From positions 558,001-622,000 of the forward strand of contig JAKMXF010000299.1 of NCBI GenBank assembly GCA_024704765.1: a stretch of DNA of 64,000 nt. Reading direction: 5' to 3'. A program made the position numbers and the translations under genes. The stretch is from Oopsacas minuta (taxonomy: Eukaryota; Animalia; Porifera). Of the stretch, positions 2,621-55,203 are shown one piece after another. Under the pieces are notes generated by a model. The model was given only the letters and a program-made list of their open reading frames with translations, ran no database searches and was not told the origin of the DNA. Within the stretch, counting starts at the first letter, position 1; each line of letters opens with the position of its first letter.

Positions 2621-5600
2621 TGAAAGGTATACATTATAAGCTACTATTAACTTTACTCCCAATATACCATTGTATTAACAATTTGACTGTAAATTCTATC
2701 AAATGGCATGAGTTGATATATGAAGATTTGGAATATTGGGGGTTTCCGGCTGATATTGAATCACCTTTCTCGCAAAAAACTATTGCTTTTGATGAAATCA
2801 AATCTGCTCTTTCATTAGTCAAATACGATTCGGTTCTTCCTTACAGTATTGTAATCTACGGACTACATGAATCAAATGCAAGGAAAATGTGTCAACACTT
2901 CCTCGAAGATCCACAACATCTTCCCTTATCTGCTCTTATGAGCGTTTTATTGTTCCGTTTCAATCGAAGTAGCCCTAAAAAAGACTTTAAGTTGATGACA
3001 GAAATTTTCAAATTTCTGAGTGCTGCATTCACAAACAAATCTCCAGTATTTGACTTCGATGAAATTAATCGTCTCAATTTCTTAACTCTCACTTACATAT
3101 CAAACACAATACAATATTTCAATCTTGAAAGCTTCAAACTATCTATAAAACTACTTTCTCAAGGTCTTTTATATTTTGATTCCAACTCAACTGATCCACT
3201 CCTAATTTCCACTGAAGATTTAAGTAAATTTTTCAATTCTGTTAAATTGTGGAATTCTCGGAATATTATCAAGGACAAAATGACATATAAAGATTACCTC
3301 AGTGAAGTGAACTTTTGGGAAGATTTTTTAAAAAAATATACTTTTCCAAAGTTAATTTCCTTACTTCATTTGATTGAAGAGTTTTTGGTTGATAGATTTA
3401 AGAGTAGTGAAATAAGGGACCAGTATATTATTGATATATTTCTGCAACTCCATAAGGAAAACAATTATTCTAATGTCCTTGAAGAAGTTTTTCTCAAAGA
3501 GCTCACTTCAAGGTTACATGCTATTGCACCTGGAGAAAAATCTACCTTTATTAATCAATTGTATGATCAATTATCAGATCCAGGACAACTGGAAAGAGTT
3601 ATCAATATTTTTAGTAAAATATTGCTTGATGAAAGGAGAGTATTTGAAGAGAATCAAATTCTTCATTTATTCACTTGGACCACTTGGGAAACATATTTTG
3701 GCTTACTAAATTTCAACATTAGTGAGGAGGTCATTTCAAAAGACGCTAAAAATATGCTAGACTCAGCTTTAGAACAATTCAAATTACTATGTTCGGACAT
3801 TAATACTTTAACCATAACATTTAATATTATGAAATTGATTAGTCAAAAGAAAAAATATTTCTTAAATCTCACAAAGATCAATTCTAAAATCGTAAACAAC
3901 AAACATATTGAACAAAACCTTGATGCCTGTTTGAACAGGTATAATTGGATATTAGACCAAAGAAACTTGTTGAAGCTCTTACACGACTTTTTAGAAAATT
4001 TCCCGAACATTAACAATGCCACTGTATCAGATTTTCTAGCAATCGACTTCGAAGTCAAGAGTCTCAGTGATATTTGTATCCCCAAAGGAACGTCATTTTC
4101 GTTTAGTCCCAATTCTATCCAAATAAATGAAATAGTTGGCTTCCCGAACTTAAAATCTCTTTGTCAAGTTTGTGATTCCTTACGCAACTCTAAAATTATC
4201 CTCAAAATTTTTAATAGGTTTATCGATGAAAAAGTAATTACATTACACACGCCTTTGGAAATTCAAGTATTCTTTGAAGAAATTTGGGAACCTGCTTGGG
4301 ATTCATGCATACAGATACTTCAACAGTTATCCGATGAATCCATTATAATATCAGACATGTGTGAGTACTTTGATAGCAGTCAAGATATTTTCATGATCAA
4401 AGCCGAGTTAAATCAACTTGAAGCTGGTTGTAAAAATTATCGGAGCGACTCACGCAAAGTAAAACACCTAAATAGTTGTGCTGATAAAATACTATTATAT
4501 TTCAATCTACAGCAATGCTCTGAGGCTGCGATTCTTATTAATAAGCTGAAAGATGCTCTCTCAATTAAAATGGAATATGACACGATCAAAAATCTAGAGA
4601 ATAGTAAGGATACCTTCTATAATGAAGAATTATCTAAAGTAAATGATAAGGTTGGCGGAATTAAAGCTGATCTCAGCAATCTAACAAAATCCAATCTCGA
4701 CGTTTTAGAGGCATTTATTGATAGAATTTCTTTTGTCAAGTGGATAAGAGATAACTTGAATGACTTAAACGAATTGAAAACCTTTGTTGACATATCTCTC
4801 ACTACATGTGGAGGTAATCCAGTGGATATTGACAGAATCACTTGTCTCAGTTCTGTATGTACCAATTTCGCTCCTCTCATATTTCGAATTAAAGAGAAGA
4901 CAAAATACAAAACGCTCATTGCTAGATGCAAAGAAGTCATTAGAAATGTTGAAAATAATAATGACTTAACGAAACTTCTCAGACAAGTAGGTAAGAGTGT
5001 GACGTTTTGGGAAGAAATGAAAAGATCCCATGGTTCGGTTGAGGAAACTACTTTAATGCAACTAAACAGTATTTTCAATTCTGGTAAGTTTTGTTTGAAG
5101 GTTGGAGAATCTCTTAATTTATGTGACATAGTAAGTCTGAGTGTTGAGAGAGAAGAGTACGATAATAGGATTTATAAATTGGAACAGTTGAACGATTTTC
5201 GTAGCAAAGTAATGCTTGTAGTCAGCAAATTTGAACAAAACACCCAGACGGACAGTTATGACAACTCTCAGCTATTTACTCATAAATTTGATTTGATATC
5301 TGAGATAGCAACTATTGTGATACAACTGATAGAAACTGGTTGCCAGAGTTTACATAATTATGAATTGACATCCAATGTTGCTGAAGATGTTCGTACATTA
5401 CTAGAAGAACGGTCAATATTGAGCAATAAACTCAAGAATTGGAGACAGAACCTCGAAGAAGCTCGCGATAAACATTATTTCCTGAACTATTACACTATCT
5501 CTCAGCTAGTATCTCTCCAGAAAGGAATTGTATCATTCACATCTGACAGAGAGGATTCTGACCTAGAACAGCTCTATCATTTACTTGGACTGATAAACCA

Positions 5601-28164: not shown

Positions 28165-29380
28165 TCACATAGCTACTATCATCTGTATTGGTATATAGAT
28201 TAGATGATAAAATATCTGAAGACAATTCTCAGCATTATGACACACTACTATAACTCTATTCTGATTGTCTACTGTAACTGCTAATGGGCTGCTAGACACA
28301 GGAATCTTGTGAACAAACTTGAATTCAGGATTGAATATAGAAATAGCGTCAGAAGAATAATGTGCAATTAGGATGAAGTCAGAATTGTTAATAAAGAAAG
28401 ACAATGGTTTTATGACTTGATTTCCTTTTCCTCGAGAAATAATACTCTTCTGGAGTATGAAGTTACGATTGGAGAGATGGATACAAGGATTTGATCCATC
28501 TAACACATAAATGTATTCTTCAGAGACATTTACATTCAGAGGCTCTTTGAGTGCATTGATACCGAATTTAGTTTTGTAACACAAGTATTTGGTAAGTATT
28601 TGTACACGATTGTTATAACGGTCACAGATATAAATATCTTCATTTGAATGATCAATTCTTAGACCCCAAGGATAGTAAAATTCAAGTTGTCCATCTCCCT
28701 GTTCACCAACTTTGAAAATGAACTTTCCATAAATAGACAAACATTTCGGGTAATTCATCGCTCCTTCACCTGTACTATCTCCGAATTTGAATAAATACTC
28801 AGCAGTACTGTCAAATACTTTAATACAGTTATTACCATGATCTGCTATATAAATATTTCCCGTCTGGTTAACTACAGTAACACCCCATGGATTGTAAAGT
28901 TGTTCATTTCCGGTTCCTAGCTCATAAACACTCACTAGAGGTTGACTCTTGTTTGTATAATCAATTCCACTTCTCACAAACTTCCCTAACTTCTTTACTC
29001 CATCTAACAATTTGTTGTTTTCACAAGTGAAACTAACCATTCTAGGTTGTTTAGGGAACTCAATTGATTCAAGTTCAGTGTCTAATCGAGTAATGATATC
29101 TTCATGTACACATTTTATAGGAGAAGTGAGTATCTCACTTTGATTGAAACTTTTGTATTTTTCTAGGGCAATCTTCTTTTCACTCAGTTTTATCAATTCA
29201 CTTTTATAAGAGCGATAACAATCCACAATTGTACCTAACTCTCTCAATAATTTACTCTCTTTCCTTTAGACTGTTGATTAACTCGAAGAATGTACTTTTA
29301 ATCTTCTCTCTCACTCGATTTACTTCTAACTCGCAGTTATCTTCTCCAGGTTGTGGTAATATAGGATTAGCTGTAGCCAT
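28165..29380 (-). pseudogene. Coiled-coil + NHL-repeat (TRIM-like beta-propeller) gene, probably pseudogene
   Basis: NHL repeats such as LYNPWGVTV...IYIADHGNNCIKVFD and FYYPWGL..IYICDRYNNRVQIL. The ATG at 29380 (MATANPIL...LKERE*) is out of frame with the 360-aa ORF; adding 2 nt to the (AG)n run near 29255 gives ERESKLLREL. One repeat is internally shortened, and the ORF reads past the expected LQIF end. Confidence 0.75.
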
Positions 29381-31101: not shown

Positions 31102-32712
31102 ATGGCTTTTAAGATATCACACCCCTCCCAAATGGATACAACAGTGATTGACCAAGAGATACTTGACCTTGCTGATTTGCCCCCTGGCGATATCAAACAA
31201 GTCGAGCTGCAGGACGGATATAAAGTTCTGCTCATTAACAATGAAGGGATAATCTCTGCTCTTGCTAATACGTGTACCCATTACGGAGCCCCGCTTATAA
31301 ACGGTGATAAGATTGGTAATACTATTCGGTGTCCTTGGCATGGAGCATGCTTCAACACAATAACAGGAGATATTGAAGAATTCCCCGGCCTGGATAGTTT
31401 AAAGAAATACGATACTACTCTCGCTAACGGTAAGATAAGGGTACGAGCTAATGTATCAGACCTCACGCAAAAGAAACGTACTAAAGGAATGGTAAAATTT
31501 TCAGAGAAAAATACTAATGTCGTGCTTCTGATTGGCGGCGGACCTGCTTCTACTGTATGTGCTGAGACTCTACGTCAAGAGGGATATGACGGGAAGATCC
31601 TCATGGCCTGTAAGGAAAGGTTTCTCCCCTACGATCGTCCCAAAGGTTCGAAAGCTATGGACACACCTCCTGAAATAATATCTCTACGAAAGAATGAGTT
31701 TTATGAAGATAACGGAATACAAGTATTGCTTGGTAAAGAAGTTATAAGCATTGATATTGAGAAGAAACAAGCCGAGTTCCAAGATGGGTCCAGACAGACA
31801 TACGATCAGCTGCTTCTAGCAACTGGCGCTGAATGTCGGACACTTCCAATCCCTGGAAATGATCTCACAGGTTTGTACACCCTGCGAACCATGGATGAGG
31901 CCAATGCTATATTCGCAGCAGCTAAAGATAAGACCGTAGCGATCATTGGTGCTTCTTTCATTGGGATGGAAGTAAGCTCTTGTCTTGTTAAAATAGCAAA
32001 ATCAGTGACTTGCATTGGAAACGCATCTCATCCATTCCCTGTCCTAGGGAAGGAGGTAGGAATGGGGCTAAAGGAATTCTCTTTGCAGCATGGTGTTAAG
32101 TTTGAGTTGGGTGTGAGGGTAGAAGCATTCATTGGGGAGGAGGGAGAGCTGAAAGGTGTGAAACTTTCTGAAGGTAAAGTGATCCCTTGTGACATTGCAG
32201 TGGTTGCAGTAGGTGTCAGACCGAGTACTGACTTCCTGATTGGTTCTGGTATAAATCTTAACAAAGATGGATCAATATCCACAAATGAATTCCTCGCAGT
32301 TAAACCAGACATATTTGCTGCTGGAGATATTGCAATGTTTCCTAGCCCGTTTGGTCACGGAGAATCTGTGCGTATTGAGCATTGGCAGATTGCACTTAAT
32401 CACGGACGTGTGGTCGCTATGAATATCCTCAAAAGGCAAACACCAGTTGATACAGTCCCCTATTTCTGGACAGTCTTGTTTGGTAAAAGTGTGCGTTACT
32501 GCGGTTACTCGAGAGGTTATGATAAATTCGTTTTCGAAGGTTCTATCTCTGAGCTAAAGTTTGTGGGATATTACTTGAGAGAAGGAAAGCTTGTTGCTGT
32601 TGTTGGACTAAATTCTGATCCAAAAGTATCCCATTATGCTAACACAATGAAAATAGGACAATTCCCTACACTAGAGGAGCTAAGACAGACAACTACACTT
32701 AACGAGTCCTAA
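31102..32712 (+). CDS. AIFM3: Apoptosis-inducing factor 3-like Rieske [2Fe-2S] / FAD-NAD oxidoreductase (single exon, 536 aa)
   Basis: Rieske ligands CTH and CPWH; FAD motif LLIGGGPA; NAD motif IIGASFIGME; IFAAGDIA and VRIEHW; reductase C-terminus VPYFWT..FGKSVRYCG. Confidence 0.9.
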   Translation: MAFKISHPSQMDTTVIDQEILDLADLPPGDIKQVELQDGYKVLLINNEGIISALANTCTHYGAPLINGDKIGNTIRCPWHGACFNTITGDIEEFPGLDSLKKYDTTLANGKIRVRANVSDLTQKKRTKGMVKFSEKNTNVVLLIGGGPASTVCAETLRQEGYDGKILMACKERFLPYDRPKGSKAMDTPPEIISLRKNEFYEDNGIQVLLGKEVISIDIEKKQAEFQDGSRQTYDQLLLATGAECRTLPIPGNDLTGLYTLRTMDEANAIFAAAKDKTVAIIGASFIGMEVSSCLVKIAKSVTCIGNASHPFPVLGKEVGMGLKEFSLQHGVKFELGVRVEAFIGEEGELKGVKLSEGKVIPCDIAVVAVGVRPSTDFLIGSGINLNKDGSISTNEFLAVKPDIFAAGDIAMFPSPFGHGESVRIEHWQIALNHGRVVAMNILKRQTPVDTVPYFWTVLFGKSVRYCGYSRGYDKFVFEGSISELKFVGYYLREGKLVAVVGLNSDPKVSHYANTMKIGQFPTLEELRQTTTLNES

Positions 32713-33644: not shown

Positions 33645-35636
33645 ATGTATTCTCGTGTGTGCTTATTCTGTATCATTATAACGTTATCTCTTGGATACGG
33701 GGCCTCAAAAGCAGGAGTGGAAGAGAGTATCAAAAAATTTTCTGTTAGTTTAGATGTAATAAATCCCCGAGATAGAAACTGTAAATTGCTGTCTAATCAT
33801 AGTAAATGTGATGTTGACCTATCTGGGGTTGTAGACAGTGCTAGGGTGTCAAGCCTAGATGATGGACTGTGGCTGATAATGACTATAAAAATCGGTGCAG
33901 CTAAACAACCATTCAAAGTGAGTTATATATTTATCGTAGTAAATGCAGTATGTCAATAGCTTGCTCTTTCCAGATATAGCTAATATGATTCAAAATATCT
34001 ATAATATGCCATCTTAGGTGGAGCTAGACACAGGATCAAACCTCCTGTGGGTATTTGGAGATAATTGCTTGGATGATAAAAACGAAGAGTGTAAGGGACA
34101 TACTAAGTTCGTTCTTGAAAAAGCTACGAAATACAAGGATTTCGAACTTGAATATGAAAGTGGGTATGTAAAAGGTAAAGAAGTCAAAGGTGTTGATGTG
34201 CATGTAACAGGCAAAATCACAATAAAGAATCAACTGTTTGGTGCTGCTGGGGATGTTGATGAAGAATATGAAGGTCTTGATGGAGTAATGGGTTAGTTAT
34301 CGATTTTAAATCATCTGCTTCTTTCAAATGTATTTTCACCTAACAATTTAAATTTTGACATTTCAATTTGTTATCTTTACAAGTATAAACACAACAATAG
34401 AAACAGGGATTTTGGGTACTTTCTTGCACTAATTTAACCCTTGAAAGTTATCCTTACAAACTTAAATTGGAAATTTACCAAAGGTGTCAAAAATATGATT
34501 AATCGAGGGTGAAAGTGTAAATGAATAATGATTAGGCACAAATGCACGGCATGACCAATTAAATGGATCCCTCATATTAAAATACATTCAAAATGTACTC
34601 GATGAATTCATTGAATATTTACGTAGTTGGAAAAGTTACGAGACATCTGTTATTCCAATACAATCTTCAGGTTTGGATATGGATATTACAGATGGATACC
34701 CTTCTGTAATATATAACATGATAGCACAGAAACTAATTACGGAGCCAGCCTACTCACTGTATCTAAAAGGGGCAACGACTGCTGTAGATGGAGGAGAGAT
34801 AACCTTTGGAGGTCGCAATGAGGATCTTGTGGTGGAAGATAGCGGAGTTATGGTTAAAATGATAAAAAGTGATTTCATCTTGGCAAAAATGACAAGTCTT
34901 AAGGTAGGAGAAGTGTTTTACTGTAGCAAAGATATAGACAAATGTAGAATAATAGTAGATTCAGGATGTACCTATATCTATGGAACTAAAGCATTTGTAG
35001 ATGATTTACACAAAGAAATAGGTAAGCAAATTTTGTAATGTCTTTATAAAAACAAGTACGCTTCGCTTGCTTGGACTATCGAATTTTGATATACAGTAGA
35101 CACCGCTTAGAATCGGCTCACTTGACCAGAAACAGAACCATCCAAATAGTATTAATATACTACTGTTAATCGGGCCAACACCTTTATTCCCCTTAATCTG
35201 GTCAAAATGGCGTGGTCCCACATGCAATGTGACGCAATTACGCGGAGTCTATACTTGTAAGATATGTAATTTTGATATTTGTGCGTTTAAATTCGATTCT
35301 GCTTTAGTATTAATCATTTAGAATTGGTTAAACCTAACCCTGATGTATGTTTTATTTGTTTGTCTTCTAACTATAGGGGCTGATGAAGAGGATATTGTTG
35401 ATTGCAAGAAGATAGATTCTTTCCCAACTCTTGAAATAATGTTTGGTCAATCAAAGATCACTTTAGAATCCAAATATTATATCGATGTAGACGAGGATAC
35501 GTGCACCAGTCTGTTTGAGATAAATGAAGACGATGACTATGAATGGTCATTAGGAGTTCCATTCTTTGTCAAGTATTACATAGAATTCGACTTTACAGAT
35601 AAGGATGAACATATTTGTTTCTGGAAAAAGAAATAA
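33645..35636 (+). CDS. Secreted pepsin-family (A1; cathepsin D/E-like) aspartic protease, 4 exons, ~385 aa
   Basis: Exons 33645-33917, 34018-34291, 34671-35021 and 35377-35636 are phase-consistent GT-AG. Signal peptide; catalytic motifs ELDTGSNLLWV and IIVDSGCT; GGEITFGG; WSLG..F..YY.EFD. Confidence 0.9.
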
Positions 35637-37232: not shown

Positions 37233-39923
37233 ATCTAGCATTAATGTAAAATCTCTATGCTTTGTTTAATACTTCTTTAATGAAGAATTACGTATAAAAC
37301 GTATTGAATAATAACATATTATACGTTCAGTCTACAATTTTTGGTGACGTAATTTCTATTAGGCTAATTTCTGCAATTAATATTTTGCATCAAAACAGTA
37401 GTTCTCGAATGGTTTAAGGAGAAATCTCAGATAGTTGACCAAACTATATAATACTTAATAATAACATATTTTAAACAAATCTAACACAATGTTATATCTC
37501 CTATTTCGAAGTTAACCTAGACTTGACGTATAACGCGATAATTATACGCGTATTATATAACTTAAATGAAAGAACGAAATCGTTGATATTTTGTACAAGT
37601 TCGAATTATTGAATGGAATATATATTATAATACCATTCAGGGGAAATTCGAGTTTTGTTCGAATTTGTGAAAGTTCGAATTAACGGTGATCGACTATATT
37701 AATATCTGACAACACAGCCTATATCTACAAATTATTCCAGGCCGAAATGACATCATCTGATTGCATACTTATCAGTCATAGTCAACATACGATAACTCGA
37801 ACCTCAGGGGAAATTAAACAAACAAGAGGTAGCTAAGCATCCGGGCAACACTCAAGAGCGCCGGGCTTGCTCAAATTCAAAGTGAATCTCTTTACTACAA
37901 TCCAAAGAGTGGACTATAATGCTGCACGAAATTAAAGGGGTTGGAGAAACATAGCGACCCTCTTGTTATCAAAATCCAGTCCATATGAATTATACAAGAT
38001 AGGGGCTAAAGTAATTCTTAGGCCACGCAAGTAATATGGGACCAAGACATACATCTAATACATTGAATCAAATCAATTCATCTTCATGTATGCATAATCT
38101 AACGCATAATCCCACAATACCTTTTTGTTCAGTTCCACCACATATAGAACAATAGCCACAATAACTGTGACAGGATTGTGGTTGTGTGGTTTAATGGTGT
38201 TAGTGGGCTGTAAAGATACGACTTGTCACTTATTCTTCAAACTCTTCATAATCGGGTAAGCTAGGTGCAGTGGAATAGCGTTCGAACTCCGAAGGAATAG
38301 TCAATCCGTGTTTCGTAATTAGATTAGATGTTCTCTTGCTACGCAGTAGAAACCCTTCATTTGTTTGGAAATAATTCTCCCACTTTCGATGGTATGCCTC
38401 TAGTCCATTTGTTAAATTTGTCTCATATATCAGGGTTTTGAGAACTCTAAGTGCATAGAAAACTTTTGTATATCATTGAAACTATAATTGTATTTAATCA
38501 CTGCAAGTGGACCTTTGGGTTCCATCACGATGCATATGTATTGTTGGAATGTGAATTGATTCGTGTCATGATTGGATATTTACTCTTCCTTTACATTTAA
38601 AACCCAAAGTCTTTGGAAACTTCGTTGATGACACGCCATTGTCTTGTGTAATTATGAAATTGGATGGGTTGGTACACTCTCCATCTTATGCATGTATTTT
38701 TGGAATCGACACCATGTTTGGACATCCTTAGGGCATTGCTATATGTATTTCATCAGTATTATCATCGTTGGTAACTATCTACATGGGGAGGCACGTTATC
38801 ACATGAATGTTTCCAATATTGTGTTTGATTACTAGCGTAGTGCTCCTATTAATAAATACATTTAGCATGTTGTGGGTACATTTTGTAATTTTAATATATT
38901 ACTTATACTGAGGCTTAAACGCTCCGTAATCAAGGGGAACATTTGCACCAAAATCATTTTACTTTGGCATAAATGGTCCACATACGATTTTAAGCGAAGT
39001 CATCAATATTTTAGTACCTTCGACAGCTCATCAATTCTGATGATTATTCTTTATACCAAAATCGTCCAAAATGTTGGTAGCCAAATATTAGATTATCCGC
39101 TTGTATCTGTTGATAATTATACTTATTCTTATCAAAACAAGCCAAAACCGTGCAGATTTCTTCTGTGACCATAGATGGTAATTTGTATACTTTGGTATAA
39201 TTAAAAACAAATAGAAAGCGGTAAATCGCATATACAAATTTTGAGGATCAAATAAAGTCAAAAATTTGATGAATTCCTTGAAGGTAATCAATATTAACAA
39301 CATCTACAGTAGTCAACTAGTTATGTAGTCTCTCGTATCTATGTAAACTTAAATCAGATACCATAGTAAATATCAGTAAGAATGAAGAATATTGCCAAAA
39401 CGACACAAGGGTAATTGTCTCATATTAGAAACGAGTTGCTTCGCTTGCTCGCGTTGCGCGGCTTGCGAACACTTTGTGTTCGCATGAGACTCCGCACTTC
39501 GTGCCTCAAATTTTACCAAAGTATAAAATTGCAATATTGAATTAATAAATATATACTTCAACAATTTGTTTACTTTATATTCATAAAAACAACAATAAGT
39601 TTCCATATGACAAACTTGAAAATGGGAAATTCGGAATCAGCATACCCGATTACCTCAATGTAATTGTGTACTTTACCTATATCGTCAACAGAAAGATGTG
39701 TTATTCCCTATACTATATCTGAAAATCAACTTCCCCTATCACTATAATACAAAGTGAACAAACAAACAAACACACCCACCCAATAATTGAGATATAATAC
39801 TATAGATTTAAACATCAAATGTTCATTTCTTCAAAGGTAAACATTGATATTCGATGTAAAACAAAATAAAAAATAAAAAATAAAAATTGTGTTCAAAACA
39901 ACAATTAGATAATATATAAATAT

Positions 39924-42796
39924 CTACGTCAGTTTCTGAATGTATTTGAGAGTTGGATCCCAATTATCAGATTTCCCTCTTGAATTGTATTCCTTTTCAT
40001 AATCTAGTGCTGCTCTACCATTTTCAGACAAGAAATTTTCAACAGCCCTTCCTGTAAAATACTGCTCCAATTCTCTCTTCTCATCCATTGTTATATACCT
40101 TGGTTGAATGTCTACTCTTTCTTTGGTCCAAGAAAATGCCCATAAGATTGTGGTTGTGTGTTTCAAAACTTCTCTTACAGGTGCAATTTGAAAATTCACA
40201 CGATTTCCAGCAAAAGCAAAATTTATTTTTCCATTTTTGTGTTCCAAATGGACTCGGAAATACTCAGCATCTCCAGAAGAACGGTCCAAGTTGAAATAGT
40301 TGGTGGGAGCAAGATTACTATGATCTTGAAACTTTGCGAGTTTTAGCAACGCTATCACATCAGGGGTGAGTTTGTATATTATTCGCAGCTGCTCAACATA
40401 ACTATCCCATTCATTTACCTCCACGCCGTATCCAACTGCAGAATATCTGTTCTCTTGGATCCGAGTCAGCTCAAGGTTGGGTCGCTTTGTAATTGGTCCT
40501 AAAATAATCAATACTAATAAAACGCAATAAATCTGTAAGTATATATCTATAATAATAAATCTCAATTGTTGTTTGTTTGTCCGTAGTCAAGGAAAGGATT
40601 TACGCTATGCAATTTTGAAATTGTCGCATAATTATGTATTTATTCTGTTTATCAAGGAAGTAAATAGAATTCAATAAAACTTCACTAAATATATCGAACA
40701 TGTGAATCCGATTTTCACACTTTTGGATTAATCATATATAAATGTATTGTTGTTTTTATGAATATAAAGTAAACAAATTTCAAAAACCGAGGTAGAATCA
40801 TACTTTTCGTGACTATGCTGGTATACTTGAGTATGCTGAGTCTGAATATTGTAAATAACATCAATATTATTAAATCTCAATTGTTGTTTGCCTGTTGTTT
40901 GTCCGTTGAATACCTCGAGCCGCAATGCGACGAACCAAAGGCTCATATATATATGTTTGTATGTCCAGGATTGATTGAAGAAACTGGAAGACCCCAGGCT
41001 GATTTTGTATACAAAGGTATTTTGGGCCTGGCTCGGACAAGCTCGAGCCTTGGGCAAAAATTCATTCCGATGACAAAATTATGACGTCCTTGTCACCTTA
41101 TTGGATTTTCGAAAAATCACATTATTAACCACTGCTCAGCCAATAATATGAATTCCGGGTATTATAAGACGTACAAATATAATCGAGCCCTGCCCTGATG
41201 TACGTAATACGAAAGTCTACTGCATGTACTCATGTGTGATAAAATGATAACAGGCTGTGGTACATTAATAAATTTCTGGGTTACCCTGTTCCCATGTCAA
41301 TAATTATGCAACAGTGTAGCATATTTTATAGACAGATCTTAGCAACGGATGAAGTATATGCGTACTTAAAGCTAAATTAAATTTTAAAAAGGATTTGACT
41401 CAAACATTAAATCAAATCAAATCAAATCAAATCAAATCAAATCAAATCAAATCAAATTCCATTTAAAATGCATCAAATCCATCCAAATTAAATCCAACTC
41501 AAAACAAATCCACAACTCTGACACAAAGTGCCGAGATTACTAACCAAAAGCGACATAGCATCTTAGGTATCACCACAGAAGGCCATTGAATTGAATTTGG
41601 ATGGACCATGGATAATAAAATCTTAAAATTTTAACTATTCTGTGAATTCAAGGCGCATAGTGCCGAGTATATTCTGTCGCGTAACGACCAATAAAACTAT
41701 ATAGTTTAGTTGTTTAGTAATTTAGCTAACCAGGAGACTTAAGCTGTAGTGCAGCGACCTAGCAAGCGAAGTGGGCCAGTATACATATTTATAGACAATG
41801 TGTGATAAAGCCTGGGAGACCAGGCTCTCACAAATCAGTGTTTAATCCAATTTCTTAGGGCCAAAATATATATACGAGCCCACCGCTTGTATATCCCTTG
41901 CGCACACTTTGTGTTTGCATGGGACTCATTCGTGCTTCAAATTTAGCAGAGTAAAAAATTGGAATATTGAATTAATAAATTAATATTTCAACTATTTGTT
42001 TACATTATATACATAAACAACAATAAATTACAAAAGAGGAACTTGAAAATGCGAACTTCGGGATTCAGCGTACTTGATTCTCCATATATTTCAGTGGGGC
42101 CGGCCGACTGAGCTGTAGCAACTCATTTTGAGATGGAAAAATCAACTAGTTGTATTGAATCAGTTGGTTGTAGTTAAATGAATCAATTAGTCATTGACTG
42201 AATGGGTTCGAATGAGTTAATAACACAAATCAGGCCTGGAGCATGGCTTTTAAATGGCAAGTAGGTAGTTATTTACCACAAGAATGGGAAGCATCCAGGG
42301 AAATGATGTACCAGTTTATTTTGCTTTAGCAGTACTTGCAAAAACTCAGTGAAAATGTGTTAAATCTCATTATGTCCAGTTTGAATCTTGAATTTACATT
42401 GGGTTGATAACAGGAATGCTCCACGGACCTCTGTATGCCTAGAACTATACATATTCGACCCAGGAGCATAGTCACTCGACTTTATAATACCTCATTAATT
42501 AGCCAAATTCATAAGCTTCGGCAATCGAGAAGGCTCAATTGAATTAGATAGAATATATGCTAATATACAGTAACACTTATACCTTCATAATGAGCTAAGT
42601 CTGTACTTTCAGAAGAATCCGATTGTCCAACAAACCTCCTCACTAGATTTGTCTTTTCATAAGGTGTGGGTGTGGATAACCAAAAATAAAAAGATAATCC
42701 ATAATACAGCAAGATCAAAAGTAAAACACACTCAAATATGAATTTTATCAGCTGTATCAGAGCTAATATGTATTTCCGTAAATGAGAGAATAGCAT
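39924..42796 (-). CDS. Uncharacterised two-exon type II membrane protein (262 aa), intact copy L
   Basis: Exon 1 (42796-42583) encodes a short N-terminus, the TM segment FIFECVLLLILLYYGLSFYFWL and a stalk, and ends at GAAG|GTATAA (phase 1). Exon 2 (40498-39924) starts after TTATTTTAG|GA (phase 1) and encodes a ~190-aa globular domain. The same exon pair and phases recur in the inverted copy. Confidence 0.75.
41409..41453. repeat. (AAATC)9 microsatellite
   Basis: Nine perfect tandem units, seen directly. Confidence 0.95.
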
Positions 42797-42894
42797 TGTT
42801 TCTTCTAAAGAGATATATGCTAATTATAAAATAATAACTATAGGTCAGTCATCTTCATCTATGTTCCATAACCCAAAAAAGATTCATTAAACAA

Positions 42895-43353
42895 TACGAG
42901 CCTTTGGCTCGTCGCTCCGCGATGAATTCGGTGCATTGCGCCTCGAGGTATACATTATTCTCCAAAGTGACAGCCCCTTTAAGTATTATAATATATATAT
43001 ATTTAGAACAATGTAATTCACAAATATACGTGTGACATATATATTATTGACTAATTTTGTGAGATCAACCCCCTTTGAAGCGGTGAGAGCAAATAGCTAC
43101 ATAAATTTGAAGATTTTGCTAATTTGTTTCCTTTATAGTCATAAAAACAACAATAAATTTACATATGATTAATCCAAAAGTGTGAAATCGGATTCAACAT
43201 GTTCGATATATTTTGTAAAGTTTATTGAATTCAATTTACTTCCTTGATAAACACGATAATTAGATAGTTATGAGACAATTTCAAAATTGCATACCGTAAA
43301 TCATTTCCTTGACAACGAACAAACAAACAACAATGTGATTTAATAATATAGAT
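42895..43353 (+). mobile_element. Non-autonomous Helitron/Helentron-like element (family A). Partial or rearranged copies at ~32927-33126, 40550-40945 (-), 43580-43790 (-), 45955-46475, 51320 (-), 52580-52790 (-), 54790-55265, 57025-57205
   Basis: 5' hairpin acgagcc-ttt-ggctcgt; conserved core tttgtttactttat..ataaaaacaacaataaatttacatatgattaatccaaaa...taccgtaaatc.tttccttgac; 3' (CAAA/CAGA)n microsatellite then ttgagattt..ataatatagat. This architecture resembles Lep1/HINE-type elements; the class assignment is an inference. Confidence 0.55.
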
Positions 43354-44221
43354 TTTTGACCCAGTACCCCTGAGGGTCCGCAAACAACATATTGCCGCCA
43401 ATTGTTTAAATATTTGTATAGAATCTATAGAGTGGAACTCGGTTAAATCTGCTAACTTTATATTGCCGCAAAGTGAACAAAGATTTATTAAATGTTGTCT
43501 ACAATGCCATAATTAGGCTCAGCATATTCGATTACCGCAGTATAGTTGCTGAAAGTATGAATCTACTACGAATTTGAAATTTGCTCACTTTATGTCTCCT
43601 AAAAGTAAACAAATATTCACAATATGTTGTTTATCATATACGGAATCAACATACTCGATTACCACAGTACAATGTTGTTTTGTTGTTGTTATGTTATCTA
43701 ATATTTGGTTCTGGACTTTATGAACTGAACATATTATATGTTTTCTATTTGGAACCGTGACAGATACACACAAATTGAGATTTAACAATATAGATGCGTC
43801 TTAAAGATTATGGCAGTATCATGCTGCTATGGTTAAGATTATGAGGTTATGTACTCGAGGGGCCGTAGGCCCGAGTGCGGACACAGAGTGTTTGCAACCC
43901 AGAGATTGTGTTTCTTGTATCATAATTATCCTTAAAGATTAATCTAGAATAAAGTTGACAGATAATTAATTGACTTAAATATGTGAATAGAATACTATAT
44001 ATATATATATACATACATATATACACTGTTATGGTTAATATTTTGATGCTGTGGCGTAGTGAAGTTGTGATTTTGACCCGCTTCCCTCCTCTGTAACGTT
44101 TTTTCGCAGTTTTGTAATACAAAAAAGGGGCTGCCACGTTTGAACGACCCCCTTTGTAAGTCAAAAATTTGACCGCATTCCTTAACCTTTTTGCAATACT
44201 AGTAATAGTGCTTTAACAATG

Positions 44222-44392
44222 CTATCCCTGCTATCCCTGCTATCCCTGCTATCCCTGCTATCCCTGCTATCCCTGTTATCCCTGCTATCCCTGTTATCCC
44301 TGCTATCCCTGCTATCCCTGTTATCCCTGCTATCCCTGCTATCCCTGCTATCCCTGCTATCCCTGCTATCCCTGCTATCCCTGCTATCCCTG
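44222..44392. repeat. 9-bp minisatellite (CTATCCCTG)19, G-quadruplex-compatible on the minus strand
   Basis: 19 units, three of them the TTATCCCTG variant. The minus strand reads GGG-N6 repeated. Confidence 0.95.
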
Positions 44393-44627: not shown

Positions 44628-44832
44628 ATGCTACTTTCTGATTTACAGAAATACATATTGGCTCTGATAAAATTCCTTTTTGCGTGTGTTTTACTTTTGA
44701 TCTTGCTGTATTATGGATTATCTTATTTATTTTGTTTATCCACAACCACAGCTTACGAAAAGATAAATCTATTGAGGAGGTTAATTGGACAATCAGATTT
44801 TTCTGAAAGTACAGACTTAGCTCATCGTGAAG
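44628..44832 (+). pseudogene. Orphan exon 1 (TM anchor) of the type II membrane protein family, copy M
   Basis: 68-codon paralog of 42796-42583 with an intact ATG and a GAAG|GTATGT donor. Homology covers 44562-45130 (upstream 65 bp, exon and start of intron), then stops. No exon 2 copy occurs before 51722. Confidence 0.7.
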
Positions 44833-46650
44833 GTATGTGTGTATAAGCCAAATTTCCTATCTAATTCAATTGAGCCTTTTCGATTTCCGAAGGCTTATGA
44901 ATTAGCTAATTAATGGGGTGTGATGAGTTTTAATACAGTTTCACTGAGTTTTTGCAAGTACTGCTGAAGCAAAATATACTGGTACATCATTTCTCTAGAT
45001 TCTTCTCATTCTTATTTCAAATATCTACCTACTTGCCATTAAAAAGCCATGCGTCCGGCCTTGATTTGTGTTGTTAACTCATTCAACTCATTCAATAACC
45101 TTAGGTAATTTTGCCAACTCAAAACGAGTTGATACAGCCCGGGGGAGCCAGGGAGGTCTGACCCCAGTAGGCCTCCAAAAATTATTGAATAGATTGACTC
45201 TACCAAGGGATAGTGGAAAACTGGATAGATTTCAGAGACTTTGCCCTCCTAAAATTCCACCAGGCCCCCTCAAAAATCCTGTTGCTGCTAAGCCCATGGG
45301 CCTCACCCTCAAATTCCTGTCGCATAACAGGCCCCGCGGCATTGCCACAGGTAAACATTTTTGGCAATACCTTATGCTCATACTATTACAATACAGCATT
45401 ACATTGTACAGTGTACTATAATATGTTTATCGTTAAAATCGTCAAAATGAATCGAGTGATTGAATTAACTAAAACAAAATAGTAAGAACTATTATGGACA
45501 AATATATTTTAGTATTTCATTAAGAAGTAAGTGATTATATACAATCTCGTATTTACCTCATTTGCTTTTGCCAATAAACTTTGAAGCTATTTTTGCTATC
45601 ATGCAGAGTAACCTTTAATAGCTGCACCAGACACATCGCTTCATTCAAATCAATGTCTTGAGCCTGTAATAGTTTTGTTCAAGATATAAGTATACCCTGG
45701 GATGCTATTTAAAGATTCATTAATGAATTTGAATTCTAAGTTCCATCACGATATGAGCGTTCTAGCCCTTGCGATACGTTGTCTAATACCATCAGCAGTT
45801 AGGTTGATCAATGTTTCCCATAGCTTAGTCAATATAAGGCCTAACAGTAATAGTACCAGGGATGCAGTATTAGCTAAGAGCATCTATATACATGGTTCTT
45901 TAGTGTAGAAAAGGTGCATTTTTGCCTAAATAAATGTATTGCATATTTGTAGAACACGAGCCTTTGGCTCGTTGCTTCGCATTGCGCCTCGAGGTATTCG
46001 ACGGCCAAACAAACAGACAAACAACAACTGAGATTCAATAATATTGATGTTGTTTACGATATTCAGACTCAGCATAGTCGTTGAAACTATGATACTACCT
46101 CGGTTTTGAAATTTGTTTACTTTATGTACCTAAAAGTAAACAAATATTCACAATATGTTGTTTACAATATCATATTCAGACTCATCATACTCGATTACCC
46201 CAGGATAGTCGTTGAAAGTATGATTCTACCTCAACTTCGAAATTTGTTTACTTTATATTTATGAAAACAACAATAAATTTACATATGATTAATCCAAAAT
46301 TGTCAAAATCGGATTCAGCATGTTCGATATATTTAGTGAAGTTTTATTGAATTCTATTTACTTCCTTGATAAACACAATAAATACATAGTTATGAGACAA
46401 TTTCAAAATTGGATACCGTAAATCCTTTCCTTGACAACGGACAAACAAACAATAATTGAGATTTAATATTATACATTTTACATTTTACACCAATAAATGC
46501 TAAAACTTTTCAGGATGCGTCAAAATATTTGTCTCGTAAGCATCTATTTAGCAAAATATGTCATTCTTCGATGCCTCGTAGAACCTTCAATATTGCATTT
46601 ATCAACTCAAAGTGAATAAATGAAATGATCTATAGATGGTTTTATACAAA

Positions 46651-48400: not shown

Positions 48401-50266
48401 GTCTATTCAAGTTTTTCTCCAATTATTCTACTTGCCAAATTGACATCTACTATAGCATTTCGATGGCCCTGTTTAGTATCCAGAAATATTTAATTTATTT
48501 CATTTTACAGCTTTATATGACTATAAATTATGTGTAATAATTTGATATATACTGATTTAGGGTTTAATATATATTTATTTTTGTAGTTGACATAATATAT
48601 CACATTCCTATACAACATACCCGAATCATAATATTATGCTTCAAACAAGATTTGGATACAATTCTTCAATAACTAATCCGTTGCTTAGTTACAGTATTCG
48701 TTATCGAAACAAGATACTATTATGAATATCCTATATAGTCCTGAATTATAAGAAACAAAATAAAATTGAATATTTTTGGAAATTAAATATGACGTCATAA
48801 TTTTTAAATACTAACTCATTCTCAAAATCTGACATTCCAAAAAATTGCCTTTAGTTAAAACCTCAGGCGAAAATGATGAGAATTGTTGAAGTTATAGCCT
48901 ACTGGAAATTTTTACCCAAAATAACCCACTGTGCAAATTGATGTATTTTATTCCATTTTATAATTGACCAATCAAGTTATACTTATTATTACCAAAATAT
49001 GACAACATACTTGCTATGGAATGTGATTGAAAGTGTAATACTACAGTTGATTCATAATTTATTGTAATTAATACACAATAACTAAATTTGAACTGATCCA
49101 TTGGAATCCTTAACTCGCTCTCCTAGAAACACCTGATATAAACACAACGGGGGAAATGTTTGGAGGAAGAAGCTTCACCCATTATTGGGGTGGAATAGTC
49201 CAGTTCCCGAATTTGAGATAATCCATACATGGTACATTGATTGTAGTTTGCAGTACTATAGATTAAGTCCTATGGTTGGGTATGAAGGACAATTGTGTAT
49301 TCGAGTCGATCAAAATATTATCACATATCAGGCCCGACGGCAAGGATTTTGAAGTGTTCCGGTTAAACTTAGTACCATTACAAAGTGGTCCAGTTGAATC
49401 TCACTTCTCATAGAAACAGTATTAGCAGCCCCATCAAGTGGCCGGTTAAAAAGCGCCAGCCCTGCATATGTTATATAATTAAGGCGCAGGGAAATTTCCG
49501 CAACTGAAGGCATAAGACGGCACGTGCCCGAGCCATACAGGCCGGAGTCTAAAATATTGTGCCGCACCCTAAAAAGATACTAACTACCCCTCTGCCCAGT
49601 CGTCCTGGCCCCACTAACTATTTATACTCTTATAACCGGAATAAAGTAATCAGAAAAGTATTAGAACAGTTTTCCATAGCATAGAGGTTATACCCTACAT
49701 GTTCTTATAACAGGCATCCACATACTAGTTGCAACTTTTGTAAAAATCAATTCTTCAGATTTCTATAAGATCAGTTGAATTTAGCTAGTTTTTGGAATGA
49801 AATGATGGAATATAGTTTATCTACCCAGCATAATGGCGTAATAATAATTTCGTTATGAATCATTGTAATTAATAATAACTTCCTCGGAAAAAATTTTGAA
49901 GGTAAAATTAGAAAACGACCGAGAGGTTTTAGTCCCAGTCCCGGTCTTGGTGAATATTGATGTTTCCCTGGGAATCCTAACCGGGAATGGACAACTAAAA
50001 GTTGTTAATTGAATTATTGAAGATTTGTAAAAATTCTAAAAATAGACTTTCATTTAAGTATTGTAGGTACTCCGCACAGTATTTATGAAATGGAAGGTGA
50101 TATTAATATCAAATTTTTCTTTCAAGTAGAAGTAAATCCTATATAACTAACACCTATTTTACACTCGCTGACCCCTGCCATTTTTTTGGGGTCAAGGAAA
50201 CTAGGTGAAGATGACTGACCTATAGTTATTATTTTATAATTTGCATATATCTTTTTAGAAGAAACA

Positions 50267-52271
50267 TTTCTATTTTCTCATTTACAGAAATACAACTTAC
50301 CTCTGATACAGCTGATAAAATTCATGTTTGAGTGTGTTATACTTTTAATCTTGCTGTATTATGGATTATCTTTTTATTTTTGGTTATTCACACCCAAACC
50401 AACACCTACACCCAAACCAACACCTACACCAATACCCACACCTAAAGAAAAGACAAATCTAGTGAGTAGGTTTGTTAGAATATCGGATTCTTCTGAAAGT
50501 ACAGACTTATCTCATTATAAAGGTATGAGTGTATATTAGCCATTTATCCTATCTAATTCAATTGAGCCTTCTCGAAGGCTTATGAATTTAGCTAATTAAT
50601 GAAGTATAATGAGTTTTAACACATTTTTACTGAGTTTTTGCAAGTATTGCCGTTGCATAATATATATATTTTGGATCCTGGATTGATTGAATACCTCAAT
50701 ATTCGCAAAGAATATTGCGCAGTCATCAATAATACCACATATGGTCATTTTCAAGATTACGTCATAATTGTCAGAAATATAATATCAAAATATATTATTA
50801 GGGTATGGGAAGTCGGGTATATATTATATGTGTGTAAGTTGGTTTGGCTGTAACATTGAAGGATGTCAAGTTATGGATGAATATTGGCCCAAATATACCA
50901 CCCAATGGTCACTACTATAACTCTGAAACTCGCTAACTTTATCATGAAAATTTTTGATATTTTGTGTCGCAGCAATCGTTAGATCCCATGGTATCATTTT
51001 TGAAACAATAAATTTACTAATTAACTCATTATAGCATTTTTTGACATAATTTCCAACTAAGCAAGCAGATGAAGTCATTTCGGTCAGGAAATACTTTGTA
51101 TATATAGAATTTGTTTATTGTCAAATATCAATAATACATTTATTCGGGTCACAATGTACCATTTTAATTTATGTATTCAATCAATCAAGGGTCCAAATTT
51201 TTCTGTGACCACCATTGCCTTGGTGTATACCTAGAGGCTTGCTCTCATAGATATATAGGGGTAATCAACTACACTGGATCCCATTTTCGCATTATCAAGA
51301 TACTCATACGTTGTAAATTTATTGTTGTTTTTACGGATATAAAGTAAATAAATAGTTGAAATCTTAAAATATTCGCACATAGAGACTTGCTCTTAACGGT
51401 TATAGATGGGTATCATGAGAAAGTGGATTAAACACTGATTTATGAGAGCCTGGTGTCCCAGGCTCTATCACACATTGCCTATTAATATGTATATTAGTTA
51501 TCTGTATAGAATATAAGTCATTAGACTAGTATAGTCTGCCACCGGATATTGTATTAGCCCTCTTTTACTTAACTCACTACGATCTTGCATTCCCCTCTGC
51601 CACTGTAAGGCGCTTCAATTTTGAATTTGAGCCGGATGCGGCAGGCCATGTTGTCATTATACTTATTCAAATATGCGTATTCGTTGTTATTATTTCACAG
51701 GGAATATTCGTTTTATTTTAGGATCAAAGCGACCCAACCTTGAGCTGACTCAGATCCATGAGAACAGATATTCTGCAGTTGGATACGGCGGGAGGTAAAT
51801 GAATGGGATAGTTATCTTGAGCAGCTGCGAATAATATACAAACTAACCCCAGATGTGATAGCGTTGCTAAAACTCGCAAGGTTTCGAGATCATATTAATC
51901 CTGCTGCTACCAACTCTTTCAACTTGGATGAATCTTCCGGAGATACTGAGTATTTCCGAGTTTATTTGGAACACAAAAATGGAAAAATAAATTTTGCTTT
52001 CGCTGGAAATCGTGTGAATTTTCAAATTGCACCTGTAAGAGAAGTTTTGAAACACACAACCACAATCTTGTGGGTATTTTCTTGGACCAACGAAAGAGTA
52101 GACATTCAACCAAAGTATATAACAATGGATGAGAAGGAAGAATTGGAGCAGTATTTTACAGGAAGGGCTGTTGAATATTTCGTGTCTGAAAATGGTAAAG
52201 CAGCACTAGATTATGAAAAAGAATACAATTCAAGAGGGAAATCTGATAATTGGTATCCAACTCTCAAATAA
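50267..52271 (+). pseudogene. Pseudogene copy R of the type II membrane protein
   Basis: Exon 1 (50267-50522) has ATG changed to TTT and an expanded TPKPTPTP stalk. Exon 2 (51722-52271) has a 1-nt deletion (GGC GTG GAG to GGC GGG AG), giving TAA at 51796-51798, and TAC changed to TAA six codons before the normal stop. Confidence 0.8.
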
Positions 52272-54216
52272 ATTCAGGAACTGACGTAGATATTTTATAT
52301 ATTATCGAATTGTATATTTGTTTGACATCGAATGTCAATTCGATGTCAATCTTTGAAGAAATGAACAATTGATGTATAAATCTATGGTACAAATATTTAA
52401 ACTCAATTATTGGGTAGGTGGGCGTTTTTGTTTGTTCACTTTGTATTATAATGATAGTGGAAGATGATTTGCGTATATAATATAGGGAATAACATATCCT
52501 TCTATTGAGGATATAGGAAAAGTACACAATTACATTGGGGGGTAATCGAGTATGCTGATTCTAATTTTCATACTTTCTAATCATATATGTAAATATATTT
52601 GCTGTTTTTATGAATAGTAAGTAAACAAATAGTTGAAATCTCGAAATATGCTTAGAGACTTGCTATTTAGGCTAGAGATGGATAAAGGACGATGAATCCG
52701 AGTTTCGCATATGCAAGTTTCTCTTATGTAAATTCTTTACTGTTTTTACGAATATAAAGTAAACAAATTGTTGAAGTATATATATTTATTAATTCAATTT
52801 TGCAATTTTATACTTTGGTAAATTCGAGGCACGAAGTGCGGAGTCTCATGCGAACACAAAGTGTTCGCAAGCCGCACAACGCGAGCAAGCGAAGCAACTC
52901 GTTTCTAATATGAGACAATTACCATTGTGTCGTTTGGACAATATTCTTCATTCTTACTGATATTTACTATGGTATCCGATTTAAGTTTGCATAGATACGA
53001 GAGACTATATAACTAGTTGACTACTGTAGATGTTGTTGAATGTTGATTGCCATCAAGGTGTTCATCAAATTTTAGATTTAATTTGATCCTCAAAATTTGT
53101 ATATGCGATTCGCCGCTTTCTATTTGCTTTTTATTATACCAATGTATACAAATTTATCATCTATAGTCACCAAAGAAATCTGCACGATTTTAGTTTGTTC
53201 TAACAAAAATAAGAAGTATAAATATTAAATATATTAGAAAGGGAACGATTCATTTTAATAAAATGATCAACAGATACAAGCGGATAATCTAACATTTGGC
53301 TGCCAACACTTTGGACGATTTGGGTATAAAGAATAATCATCAGAATTGATGAGGTGTCTAAGGTAATCAAATATTGATTACTTCGCTTAAAATCGTATGT
53401 GGACCATTTATCCCAAAGTAAAATGATTTTGGTACAAATGTTCCCCTTGATTACGGAGCGTTTAAGCCTCAGTATAAGTAATATATTAAAATTACAAAAT
53501 GTGCCCACAACATGGTAAATGTATTTATTAATGGGGCACTAGGCTAGTAATCAAACACAATCTTGGAAACATCCATGTGATAACGTGCCTCCTCATGTAG
53601 TTAGTTACCAACGATGATAATACTGATGAAATGCATATAGCAATGCCCTAAGGATGGCCAACATGGTGTCGATTCCAAAATACATGCATAAGATGGAGAA
53701 TATACCAACCCACCATCCAAATTCATAATTACACAAGCCAATGCCGTGTCATCAACGAAGTTTCCAAAGACTTTGGGTTTTAAATGTAAAGGAAGAGTAA
53801 ATATCTAATCATGACATGAAGTAATTCACATTCCAACAATACATATGCATCGTGATGGAATCCGAAGGTCCACTTGCAGTGATTAAATACAATTATAGTT
53901 TCAATGATATACAAAAGTTTTCTATGCACTTAGAGTTCTCAAAACCCCTAATATATGAGACAAATTTAACAAATGGACTAGAGGCATACCATCGAAAGTG
54001 GTGAATTATTTCCAAACAAATGAAAGGTTTCTACTGCGTAGCAAGAGAACATCTAATCTAATTACGAAACACGGATTGACTATTCCTTCGGAGTTCGGAT
54101 GCTATTCCACTGCACCTAGCTTACCCGATTATGAATAGTCTGAAGAATAAGTAACAAGTCGTATCTTTACAACCCGCTAACACCATAAAACCACACAACC
54201 ACAATCCTGTCACAGT

Positions 54217-54363
54217 TATTGTGGCTATTGTTCTATATGTGGTGGAAGTGAACAAAAGGGTATTGTGGGATTATGGGTTAGATTATGCATACATGAAGAT
54301 GAAATTGATTTGATTCAGTGTATTAGATGTATGTCTTGGTCCCATATTACTTGCGTGGCCTAA
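54217..54363 (+). pseudogene. Cys/His-rich PHD-like coding relic (mirror copy ~38020-38165, minus), possibly a transposase C-terminus
   Basis: YCGYCSICGG...DLIQCIRCMSWSHITCVA*. A TNLTNGLEAYHRKW peptide near 53960-54002 resembles the MULE TNN.LE.H motif. Many stops surround both. Confidence 0.35.
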
Positions 54364-54967
54364 GAATTACTTTAGCACCTATCTTGTATAATTTCTATGG
54401 ACTGGATTTTTATAACAAGAGGGTCGCTATATTTCTCCAACCCTTTAATTTCGTGCATTACAGTTCACTCTTTAGCTTGTAGTGAAGAGATTCACTTTGA
54501 ATTTGAGCAAGCCCGGCGCTCTTGAGTGTTGCCCGGATGCTTAGCTACTTCTTTTGTTTGTTTAATTTCCCTGAGGTTCGAGTTATCGTATGTTGACGGT
54601 AACTGATAAGTATGCAATCAGATGACATCATTCGGCCTAGAATAATTTGTAGATATAGACTGTGTTGTCAAATATCAATATAGTCGACCACCGTTAATTC
54701 GAACTTTCCGCACTTTGCCAACATTTGTACTAGACTATATCTGCATTTATCTCCAATGAATTACAGATACTACTTAATTATATATTAATTTACTTTCGTT
54801 ACATTTATATTCCTAAAAACAACAATAAATTTACATATGATTAATCCAAAAGTGTGAAAATCGGATTCAGCATGTTCGATATATTTAGTGAAGTTTTATT
54901 GAATTCAATTTACTTCCTTGATAAACACAATAAATACATAGTTATGAGACAATTTCAAAATTGGATA

Positions 54968-55203
54968 CCGTAAACTGGGGCTACTTTGGCCCACTGGGTT
55001 TGCTTTAGCCCAAATATCAAAGTTTCAAAGAAACTAGATTAGATTCAGTATTATACTTGAAAATGACTTGCCAAAATTTTAACGAATTTTCAAATATCGG
55101 TAGACAATTTCGAAAACAAATACAATATTTATTCGACACGTACGCAAATTTCAATATTTGGGCTAAAGGAAAGCCAGTGGGTCAAAATAGCCCCAGTTTA
55201 CGG
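54968..55203. mobile_element. pogo/Tc1-type MITE (236 bp) nested in a family A element
   Basis: TA|CCGTAAACTGGGGCTACTTTGGCCCACTGG ... CCAGTGGGTCAAAATAGCCCCAGTTTACGG|TA. Removing it restores ggata-cc(g/t)taaatcctttcc, as in the uninterrupted copies. Confidence 0.85.

Follow-up and report, generated by a model that had tools for sequence, protein, structure and literature searches.

Here we describe a two-exon gene on the minus strand of a 64,000-nucleotide stretch of the glass sponge Oopsacas minuta (contig C299:558001-622000, referred to throughout as the window), which spans window positions 39924-42796 and encodes the hypothetical protein LOD99_7371 of 262 amino acids (P0001). The translations of its two exons, made separately, equal the deposited protein, with exon 2 being 100% identical to P0001 residues 73-262; a preliminary description of this stretch had the coordinates right and had pointed to a real gene. 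We propose, with about even confidence, that LOD99_7371 is a membrane-tethered derivative of a family of non-enzymatic binding domains located in the lumen of the endoplasmic reticulum (ER). The parts of the gene are listed below; residues are numbered on the full-length database record P0001, and the two exons were searched separately.

42583-42796, minus strand: coding part of exon 1, from Met1 to the first base of codon 72, encoding a basic 8-residue tail, a predicted signal-anchor and a stalk; start ATG at 42796, GT donor at 42582-42581.
42677-42772, minus strand: predicted hydrophobic signal-anchor, residues 9-40 (YILALIQLIKFIFECVLLLILLYYGLSFYFWL), from Kyte-Doolittle hydropathy.
40499-42582, minus strand: phase 1 intron of 2084 bp with GT..AG ends, containing high-copy repeats and an (AAATC)9.8 microsatellite.
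39924-40498, minus strand: coding part of exon 2, encoding the 190-residue domain; AG precedes 40498, TAG stop at 39926-39924.
39981-40469, minus strand: folded alpha+beta core, as predicted in the AlphaFold2 model.
40104-40178, minus strand: predicted b5-turn-b6 hairpin with a Trp at its tip (model strands 108-118 and 122-132; predicted local distance difference test (pLDDT) of the block 94-96).

LOD99_7371 is a real, spliced and constrained gene. The locus is present in four read runs, all from one sample of one study, of which three are flat over exons and intron and so DNA-like; in the remaining run, X2, depth is 372-3,886 in exon bins against 81 in the unique intron bins at 42142-42585, an enrichment of the exons of ∼40-fold. 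Contigs from X2 stop at 40500 with a loose end, TCATAATG, which past a shared CT is the exact plus-strand continuation into exon 1 of the intact copy (CTTCATAATG). A pseudogene copy elsewhere in the window (copy C, below) would instead give CTTTATAATG at the junction, and the X2 splice junction 40498/42583 matches the intact copy. RNA-seq libraries were produced in the same genome project and used for gene prediction (PMC10280926). On the basis of the exon-biased depth, the junction-matching loose end and the existence of these libraries we take X2 as RNA and the splice junction as observed; the library type of X2 is not on record, and contig depth is non-quantitative. X2 also contains two differences specific to the pseudogene, a G>T change at 40368 and a 1-bp deletion at 40423, and the broken copy C seems to be transcribed as well.

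Constraint is apparent from related sponges. Against orthologous exons in three ENA assemblies, and counting only pairs with unsaturated synonymous divergence (dS), the ratio of nonsynonymous to synonymous substitution rates (dN/dS) of exon 2 is 0.20-0.26, which points to purifying selection on the orthologues. A homologous exon 1 was found at L015:7925-8140 (62% identity) and at L014:9562-9777 (56% identity), in both cases with the same Met start, hydrophobic segment and stalk motif, and the splice acceptor of the L005 orthologue falls at the same codon. The assemblies that hold these orthologues probably come from related glass sponges, because the Brix protein encoded beside the L014 cluster shares 75% identity with its O. 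minuta counterpart. The 8 kb upstream of the L005 orthologue yielded no exon 1, for which a transposase-fragment-like, mariner-like open reading frame (ORF) upstream of its exon 2 (L005:6725-7189, plus strand, judged by eye) may account. The orthologues in L005 and L015 are followed downstream by a myosin gene, a synteny that is not seen in the window.

Further copies of the gene lie in the window, where the intact gene and a pseudogene stand head to head on opposite arms of a large inverted duplication, with a centre of ∼7.3 kb that contains a lone first exon.

37669-42883, no strand assigned: left arm of the inverted duplication, holding the intact gene (inverted-repeat pairs I1-I23, 85-96% complementary).
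50180-54708, no strand assigned: right arm of the inverted duplication, holding the pseudogene (inverted-repeat pairs).
44628-44832, plus strand: copy B, a lone exon 1 with an intact ORF and a GT donor, 73% identical to exon 1 by tblastn and part of inverted repeat I7.
50270-50522, plus strand: exon 1 of pseudogene copy C, with its start codon lost and its stalk enlarged by an 18-bp Thr/Pro/Lys repeat (tandem repeat 50390-50444).
51722-52289, plus strand: exon 2 of pseudogene copy C; at the DNA level it matches the intact copy with 94-95% identity, and it is disrupted by deletions of 6 bp and 1 bp (the latter a frameshift) and by a TAC>TAA stop.

The 18-bp repeat in the copy C stalk encodes Thr-Pro-Lys-Pro units. 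No exon 2 was detected for copy B, and a profile search of the six-frame ORFs found only two copies of exon 2 in the window. With a partner copy that is a pseudogene, a third reduced to exon 1 and an intron filled with repeats, LOD99_7371 might itself be regarded as a decaying gene or a chance ORF within a repeat-rich palindrome. This we consider extremely improbable, given that both exons are intact, that the splice junction occurs in X2, that dN/dS is low, that related sponges keep the two-exon structure and that the fold prediction is confident; a spurious ORF was rejected on the splicing evidence together with the conservation.

Repeats are abundant around the gene. Within the intron, repeat depth reaches 1e4-1e5 in read contigs, and the segments 40477-41142 (intron) and 42808-43000 (upstream) have contig depths of 1e4 to 3.7e5 in all four runs. 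These segments are very high-copy short repeats that resemble miniature inverted-repeat transposable elements, with related copies at 43114-43334, 46236-46476 and 54871-54974. The perfect (AAATC)9.8 microsatellite of the intron occupies 41409-41457. Just upstream of copy B, a 9-bp tandem repeat (TGCTATCCC; 44220-44392, 19 copies, 96% matches) has open frames that read (SRD)n or (LLS)n and is probably non-coding. The neighbouring ORFs, judged by eye from their translations, resemble an AIF-like Rieske/pyridine-nucleotide oxidoreductase (31102-32712, plus strand, a single frame of 536 amino acids), a multi-exon pepsin-like aspartic protease (33645-35636, plus strand) and an NHL-repeat protein (28165-29247, minus strand).

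LOD99_7371 has the appearance of a type II single-pass membrane protein, a topology taken from hydropathy and charge heuristics. Residues 1-8 (MLFSHLRK) form a short basic tail, and residues 9-40 are hydrophobic, with a best 19-residue Kyte-Doolittle window of 2.55 and flanking charges of +2 (N side) and 0 (C side). By these heuristics the protein has what is expected of a type II (N-in) protein, a single hydrophobic segment near the N terminus that is 19 residues or longer and more positive on its N side, and the L014 and L015 orthologues share the same hydropathy and charge pattern. For residues 9-40 a signal-anchor is more probable than a signal peptide that is cleaved off, since the segment appears too long for the h-region of the latter, and the positive charge on the N side favours the N-in orientation under the positive-inside rule. 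The short stalk that follows (residues 41-72) contains STPTP and SDSSEST; the Thr/Pro/Ser stalk of the preliminary description is thus present, but its enrichment is modest. The ectodomain contains no Cys and, in our own reading of the sequence, no N-x-S/T sequon. The layout anticipated for this protein (a short cytosolic tail, a signal-anchor, a stalk, and an extracellular alpha/beta domain that lacks Cys and any recognised catalytic motif) is supported, the domain being predicted to lie on the luminal or outer side; exon 2 contains no Cys. At the C terminus, LOD99_7371 and its window-type clade are conserved as ...NWD..LK.IQKL[TIFM], LOD99_7371 itself ending in QKLT.

The protein had been called an orphan, which proved wrong. 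In addition to close orthologues and paralogues (close matches, n=7), a search of 1.84 billion cluster representatives with a profile recovered 46 proteins of 129-351 amino acids at E<=1e-3, including ten at E<=1e-10. The family is defined by a 52-sequence alignment (A3), to which the window ORF belongs with 175.8 bits (E 1e-52), and it carries the pattern F..Y.E / G...Y.R....K...ID.A.....F.L / YF..KA...F across predicted elements b1 to a3. Named members come from Nematostella vectensis (XP_048590654.1, also N-terminally anchored) and from the foraminifera Nonionella stella and Bolivina argentea, and the family is also present in assemblies of other marine eukaryotes. Pfam gave no family for the two exons, for 10 relatives or for all 52 aligned members, but only scattered chance matches, and when the PDB was searched by sequence with profiles A1 and A3, no related chain emerged, only designed repeat proteins and noise. 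No further named relatives emerged from a word-index search with the 52-sequence alignment, and a literature search by three database identifiers found no paper on the family. An ESM Atlas feature search with the domain scored <=0.80, to bacterial clusters, and one with the relative P0022 returned nothing. By the tests run here, the family appears to be undescribed and a member of no known kind.

Members of the family are clustered in the related sponge contigs, with four tandem genes in L013 and, in L014, two window-type copies and several other members beside the Brix gene. One member in the latter (L014:11896-12645, minus strand) is broken up by a long microsatellite, which translates into a run of ∼150 valines. 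In O. minuta, contig C310 carries a head-to-head pair of distant paralogues (23-28% identity):

L003:1441-2025, minus strand, and L003:2536-2754, plus strand (C310 about 91940-93260): the pair P0008 and P0017.

In P0008, a one-base shift of the reading frame occurs within a run of C immediately ahead of the conserved C-terminal helix, and in the other frame the protein would end in a Cys-x6-Cys loop; the shift is either genuine damage to the gene or an artefact of assembling the homopolymer. In a quick maximum-likelihood tree (P0007 and P0016 omitted as fragments, P0008 trimmed) the window-type clade had a support of 99 in the Shimodaira-Hasegawa-like approximate likelihood ratio test (SH-aLRT) and was nested in a 20-row clade (SH-aLRT 97), which also holds other genes of the sponge clusters, namely paralogues with signal peptides and -EL tails.

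These tails point to the ER lumen. A C terminus in -EL occurs in 9 of the 46 representatives (IKEL, NREL, NDEL, KQEL, RDEL, QDEL, TDEL, QLEL and KNEL; P=8e-11 under the family composition) and one in -DL in a further 2/46, and sponge-cluster paralogues end in TKEL, NEEL, NREL, NDEL and RSEL. An N-terminal hydrophobic segment is present in 21 of the 46, many of the rest being truncated gene calls. We read most of the relatives as soluble proteins that carry a signal peptide. A small Cys-x(4-6)-Cys loop is a second recurrent ending among the relatives; the window-type clade has neither this loop nor an -EL tail. Mammalian KDEL receptors accept nearly any residue at -3 and K/R/H/N/F/W/Y at -4 (Raykhel et al. 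2007, PMC2140024), and owing to this tolerance most of the -EL tails are plausible retrieval signals. The combination of a cleavable signal peptide and a KDEL-like tetrapeptide that marks soluble ER residents is found in paralogues and distant relatives and is absent from the window protein itself.

With the 52-sequence alignment, AlphaFold2 predicted the domain with a mean pLDDT of 86.6 (82.6-86.6 over five models) and a predicted template modelling score (pTM) of 0.74; with 7 sequences only, the model was unusable (pLDDT 41.5). In the numbering of P0001:72-262, the predicted elements are b1 (11-27), a1 (28-42), a2 (46-55), b2 (60-72), b3 (75-88), b4 (91-105), b5 (108-118), b6 (122-132) and a3 (138-173), in the order b-a-a-b5-a, with b2-b6 (60-132) forming long antiparallel strands and a3 spanning 36 residues. 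Conserved positions across the family lie in b1 (F11, Y14, E16 in 96%, and G25), at P45, in b3 (G76, Y80, R82, K87), in b4 (D93, A95, F103, L105) and in a3 (Y147, F148, K151, A152, F156). The family alignment contains no invariant column, and no catalytic constellation was recognised in it. A homodimer prediction, made without use of the alignment and with the fold uncertain, scored 0.00 and carries no weight for or against a dimer. Two segments singled out earlier are recovered in the model: the hairpin-like one corresponds to b5 and b6 joined by a Leu-Trp-Ala turn, and the helix TMDEKRELEQYF to the start of a3.

A Foldseek search of the PDB gave nothing at E<=1e-3. Below that threshold, Cyt1Aa, Cyt2Aa, Evf, volvatoxin A2 and Cyt2Ba recur among the top matches (E 9e-3 to 0.12, probability 0.33-0.69, template modelling (TM) score 0.18-0.26), and this recurrence, together with the birth-and-death turnover of the family in the palindrome, could be read as the mark of a tethered, Cyt-like membrane-active protein. 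Such a protein would insert its long strands or its Trp-tipped hairpin into target membranes, in the manner proposed for the Bacillus thuringiensis Cyt toxins and volvatoxin A2, and would serve as a surface defence effector of the syncytium. We regard this as quite unlikely. The Pfam family of these toxins (PF01338, Bac_thur_toxin) has no match at E<=10 for the window domain and none at E<=1 in the 52 members, and the hairpin is the least conserved element of the fold (mean column entropy 2.9-3.1, with 15% gaps in b6), is shorter in the sister clade and is charged at 7 of its 24 residues (K, E, R or D; own count). The ER-retrieval-like tails of paralogues and the purifying selection also speak against it. 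The preliminary description had also compared an exposed aromatic hairpin to membrane-binding or pore-forming effectors and had speculated on a tethered role in defence or allorecognition; the first finds no support in these features of the hairpin and its paralogues, nor does the second in a dN/dS unlike that of typical allorecognition genes and in tails that point to the ER lumen. An allorecognition gene was rejected on account of the purifying selection, and such a role appears unlikely.

Helix-grip proteins and hotdog thioesterases were matched in the PDB at levels similar to, or weaker than, the Cyt proteins. Helix-grip folds have the element order b-a-a-b5-a, which is also that of the window domain, and PR-10 Fra a 1, MtN13, Aster-A, Ups1 and a CoxG protein were among the weak Foldseek matches. 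LOD99_7371 could accordingly be conceived of as a carrier of the Bet v 1/START type that would operate in the lumen or at the surface and enclose a lipid or another small hydrophobic molecule between its sheet and its long C-terminal helix. We think this unlikely, as those matches have E of 0.08-0.13, probability of 0.08-0.51 and TM of ∼0.2, and none of the 52 members matches START, Bet_v_1 or Polyketide_cyc in Pfam. A structure search of the ESM Atlas reached a TM of 0.34 at most. Remote kinship with SecB-like, Cyt or helix-grip folds may yet come to light.

The sole confident structural look-alikes of the modelled domain are giant-virus proteins of the Mimiviridae/Klosneuvirinae. Five predicted viral structures from BFVD match with E of 1.4e-7 to 4e-6, probability 1.00 and TM of up to 0.60: A0A3G5A862 (Hyperionvirus), A0A650DA38, A0A3G4ZN21 (Terrestrivirus), A0A6G6ADX5 (Borely moumouvirus) and A0A3G4ZYQ2 (Edafosvirus). 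That confident relatives by structure are confined to these viruses, that the distribution is patchy (sponges, one cnidarian, foraminifera) and that most members are single-exon genes in arrays would suit a family exchanged with giant viruses, be it a nucleocytoviral protein captured by marine eukaryotes or the reverse, with a role in an ER-derived virus factory and not in normal sponge physiology. The link to the viral proteins is structural only, and the sponge genes have a host-like composition and a host intron, so that we hold this explanation to be very improbable. A bolder extension, which we rate as improbable, is that this is a new fold-level ER-luminal family common to giant viruses and marine eukaryotes (glass sponges, cnidarians, foraminifera), which may have traded it, and that glass sponges turned one copy into a tethered form on the syncytial surface, a defence receptor or effector whose sheet would act on foreign particles or membranes.

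Our preferred reading remains the tethered derivative of an ER-luminal family. In this proposal, the ancestor would have been a soluble ER-luminal protein with a signal peptide, as suggested by the -EL tails and signal peptides of relatives that include the sponge sister clade. The glass-sponge lineage would then have gained a 5' exon encoding anchor and stalk, which replaced signal peptide and retrieval tail. The resulting type II single-pass protein would keep its N-terminal tail in the cytosol and, beyond an anchor and a stalk of ∼30 residues each, expose a 165-residue alpha+beta domain and its conserved tail to the lumen of the secretory pathway or the cell exterior. The domain may serve as a binding module without enzymatic activity, in which the large twisted sheet would retain a polypeptide or a hydrophobic ligand; it would act in the lumen of the ER or Golgi, or at the surface after delivery. 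We infer this topology, compartment and binding function for LOD99_7371, and consider a role inside the secretory pathway more likely than that of a pore-forming surface weapon. Several observations weigh against the proposal. The structure searches yielded no annotated relative, and the binding module is argued from the absence of catalytic residues and from context. The N-in topology is derived from hydropathy and charge heuristics only, and a type II anchor with a stalk would suit a cell-surface protein too. The tail of the window protein and its orthologues, IQKL[TIFM], is not KDEL-like, and the rules for KDEL variants derive from mammalian receptors. The RNA support is confined to a single run of a single sample, the type of which is unrecorded.

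Glass sponges are in effect one giant syncytium whose secretory and surface biology is scarcely known, and LOD99_7371 offers a handle on it. The family has no database name, a fold that is predicted with confidence but lacks a clear match among solved structures, and a strong ER-retrieval signature, and its distribution connects early-branching animals, foraminifera and, by shape, giant viruses. If it is a luminal chaperone or carrier, it would add to the early secretory pathway a component that is missing from model organisms; if it passed to or from giant viruses, it would record an ancient exchange between viruses and their marine eukaryotic hosts. Non-model animals have many uncharacterised families; we see this one as a candidate for a new Pfam entry, readily accessible to localisation and structural studies, and as a well-delimited lead rather than the discovery of a mechanism.

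Among known systems, SecB and SecB-like proteins (SecB 1qyn/1fx3, Rv1957 5mtw, DUF1149-type 2o2a/2hng) are to be named with the closest. The Cyt delta-endotoxins, volvatoxin A2 and Evf (PF01338 fold) differ in that only half of the Cyt domain is covered by the match, at the low TM scores given above, and in a family context that points to the ER lumen and not to secretion as a toxin. The uncharacterised proteins of Mimiviridae-type giant viruses are predicted to share the overall fold of the window domain (root-mean-square deviation 3.8 over 161 columns) at a similar size (187-266 amino acids), but their identity to it is only 10-17%, they carry no annotation, and the likeness is one of structure only. 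Golgi-type type II proteins have a short basic cytosolic tail, a signal-anchor, a stalk and a luminal globular domain. LOD99_7371 has the same layout as these glycosyltransferase-like membrane proteins, but its luminal domain is small (∼165 residues) and lacks a nucleotide-sugar binding fold, a DxD motif and a transferase family match. From the KDEL-retrieved soluble ER residents (PROSITE ER_TARGET, motif set PMC2140024) the window protein is set apart by its signal-anchor, its QKLT ending and a domain unlike any known ER chaperone family, whereas its sponge paralogues and many distant relatives likewise combine a signal peptide with a tail, and share with these residents the endings RDEL, QDEL, NDEL, TDEL, KQEL, KNEL, NEEL, NREL, RSEL and TKEL.

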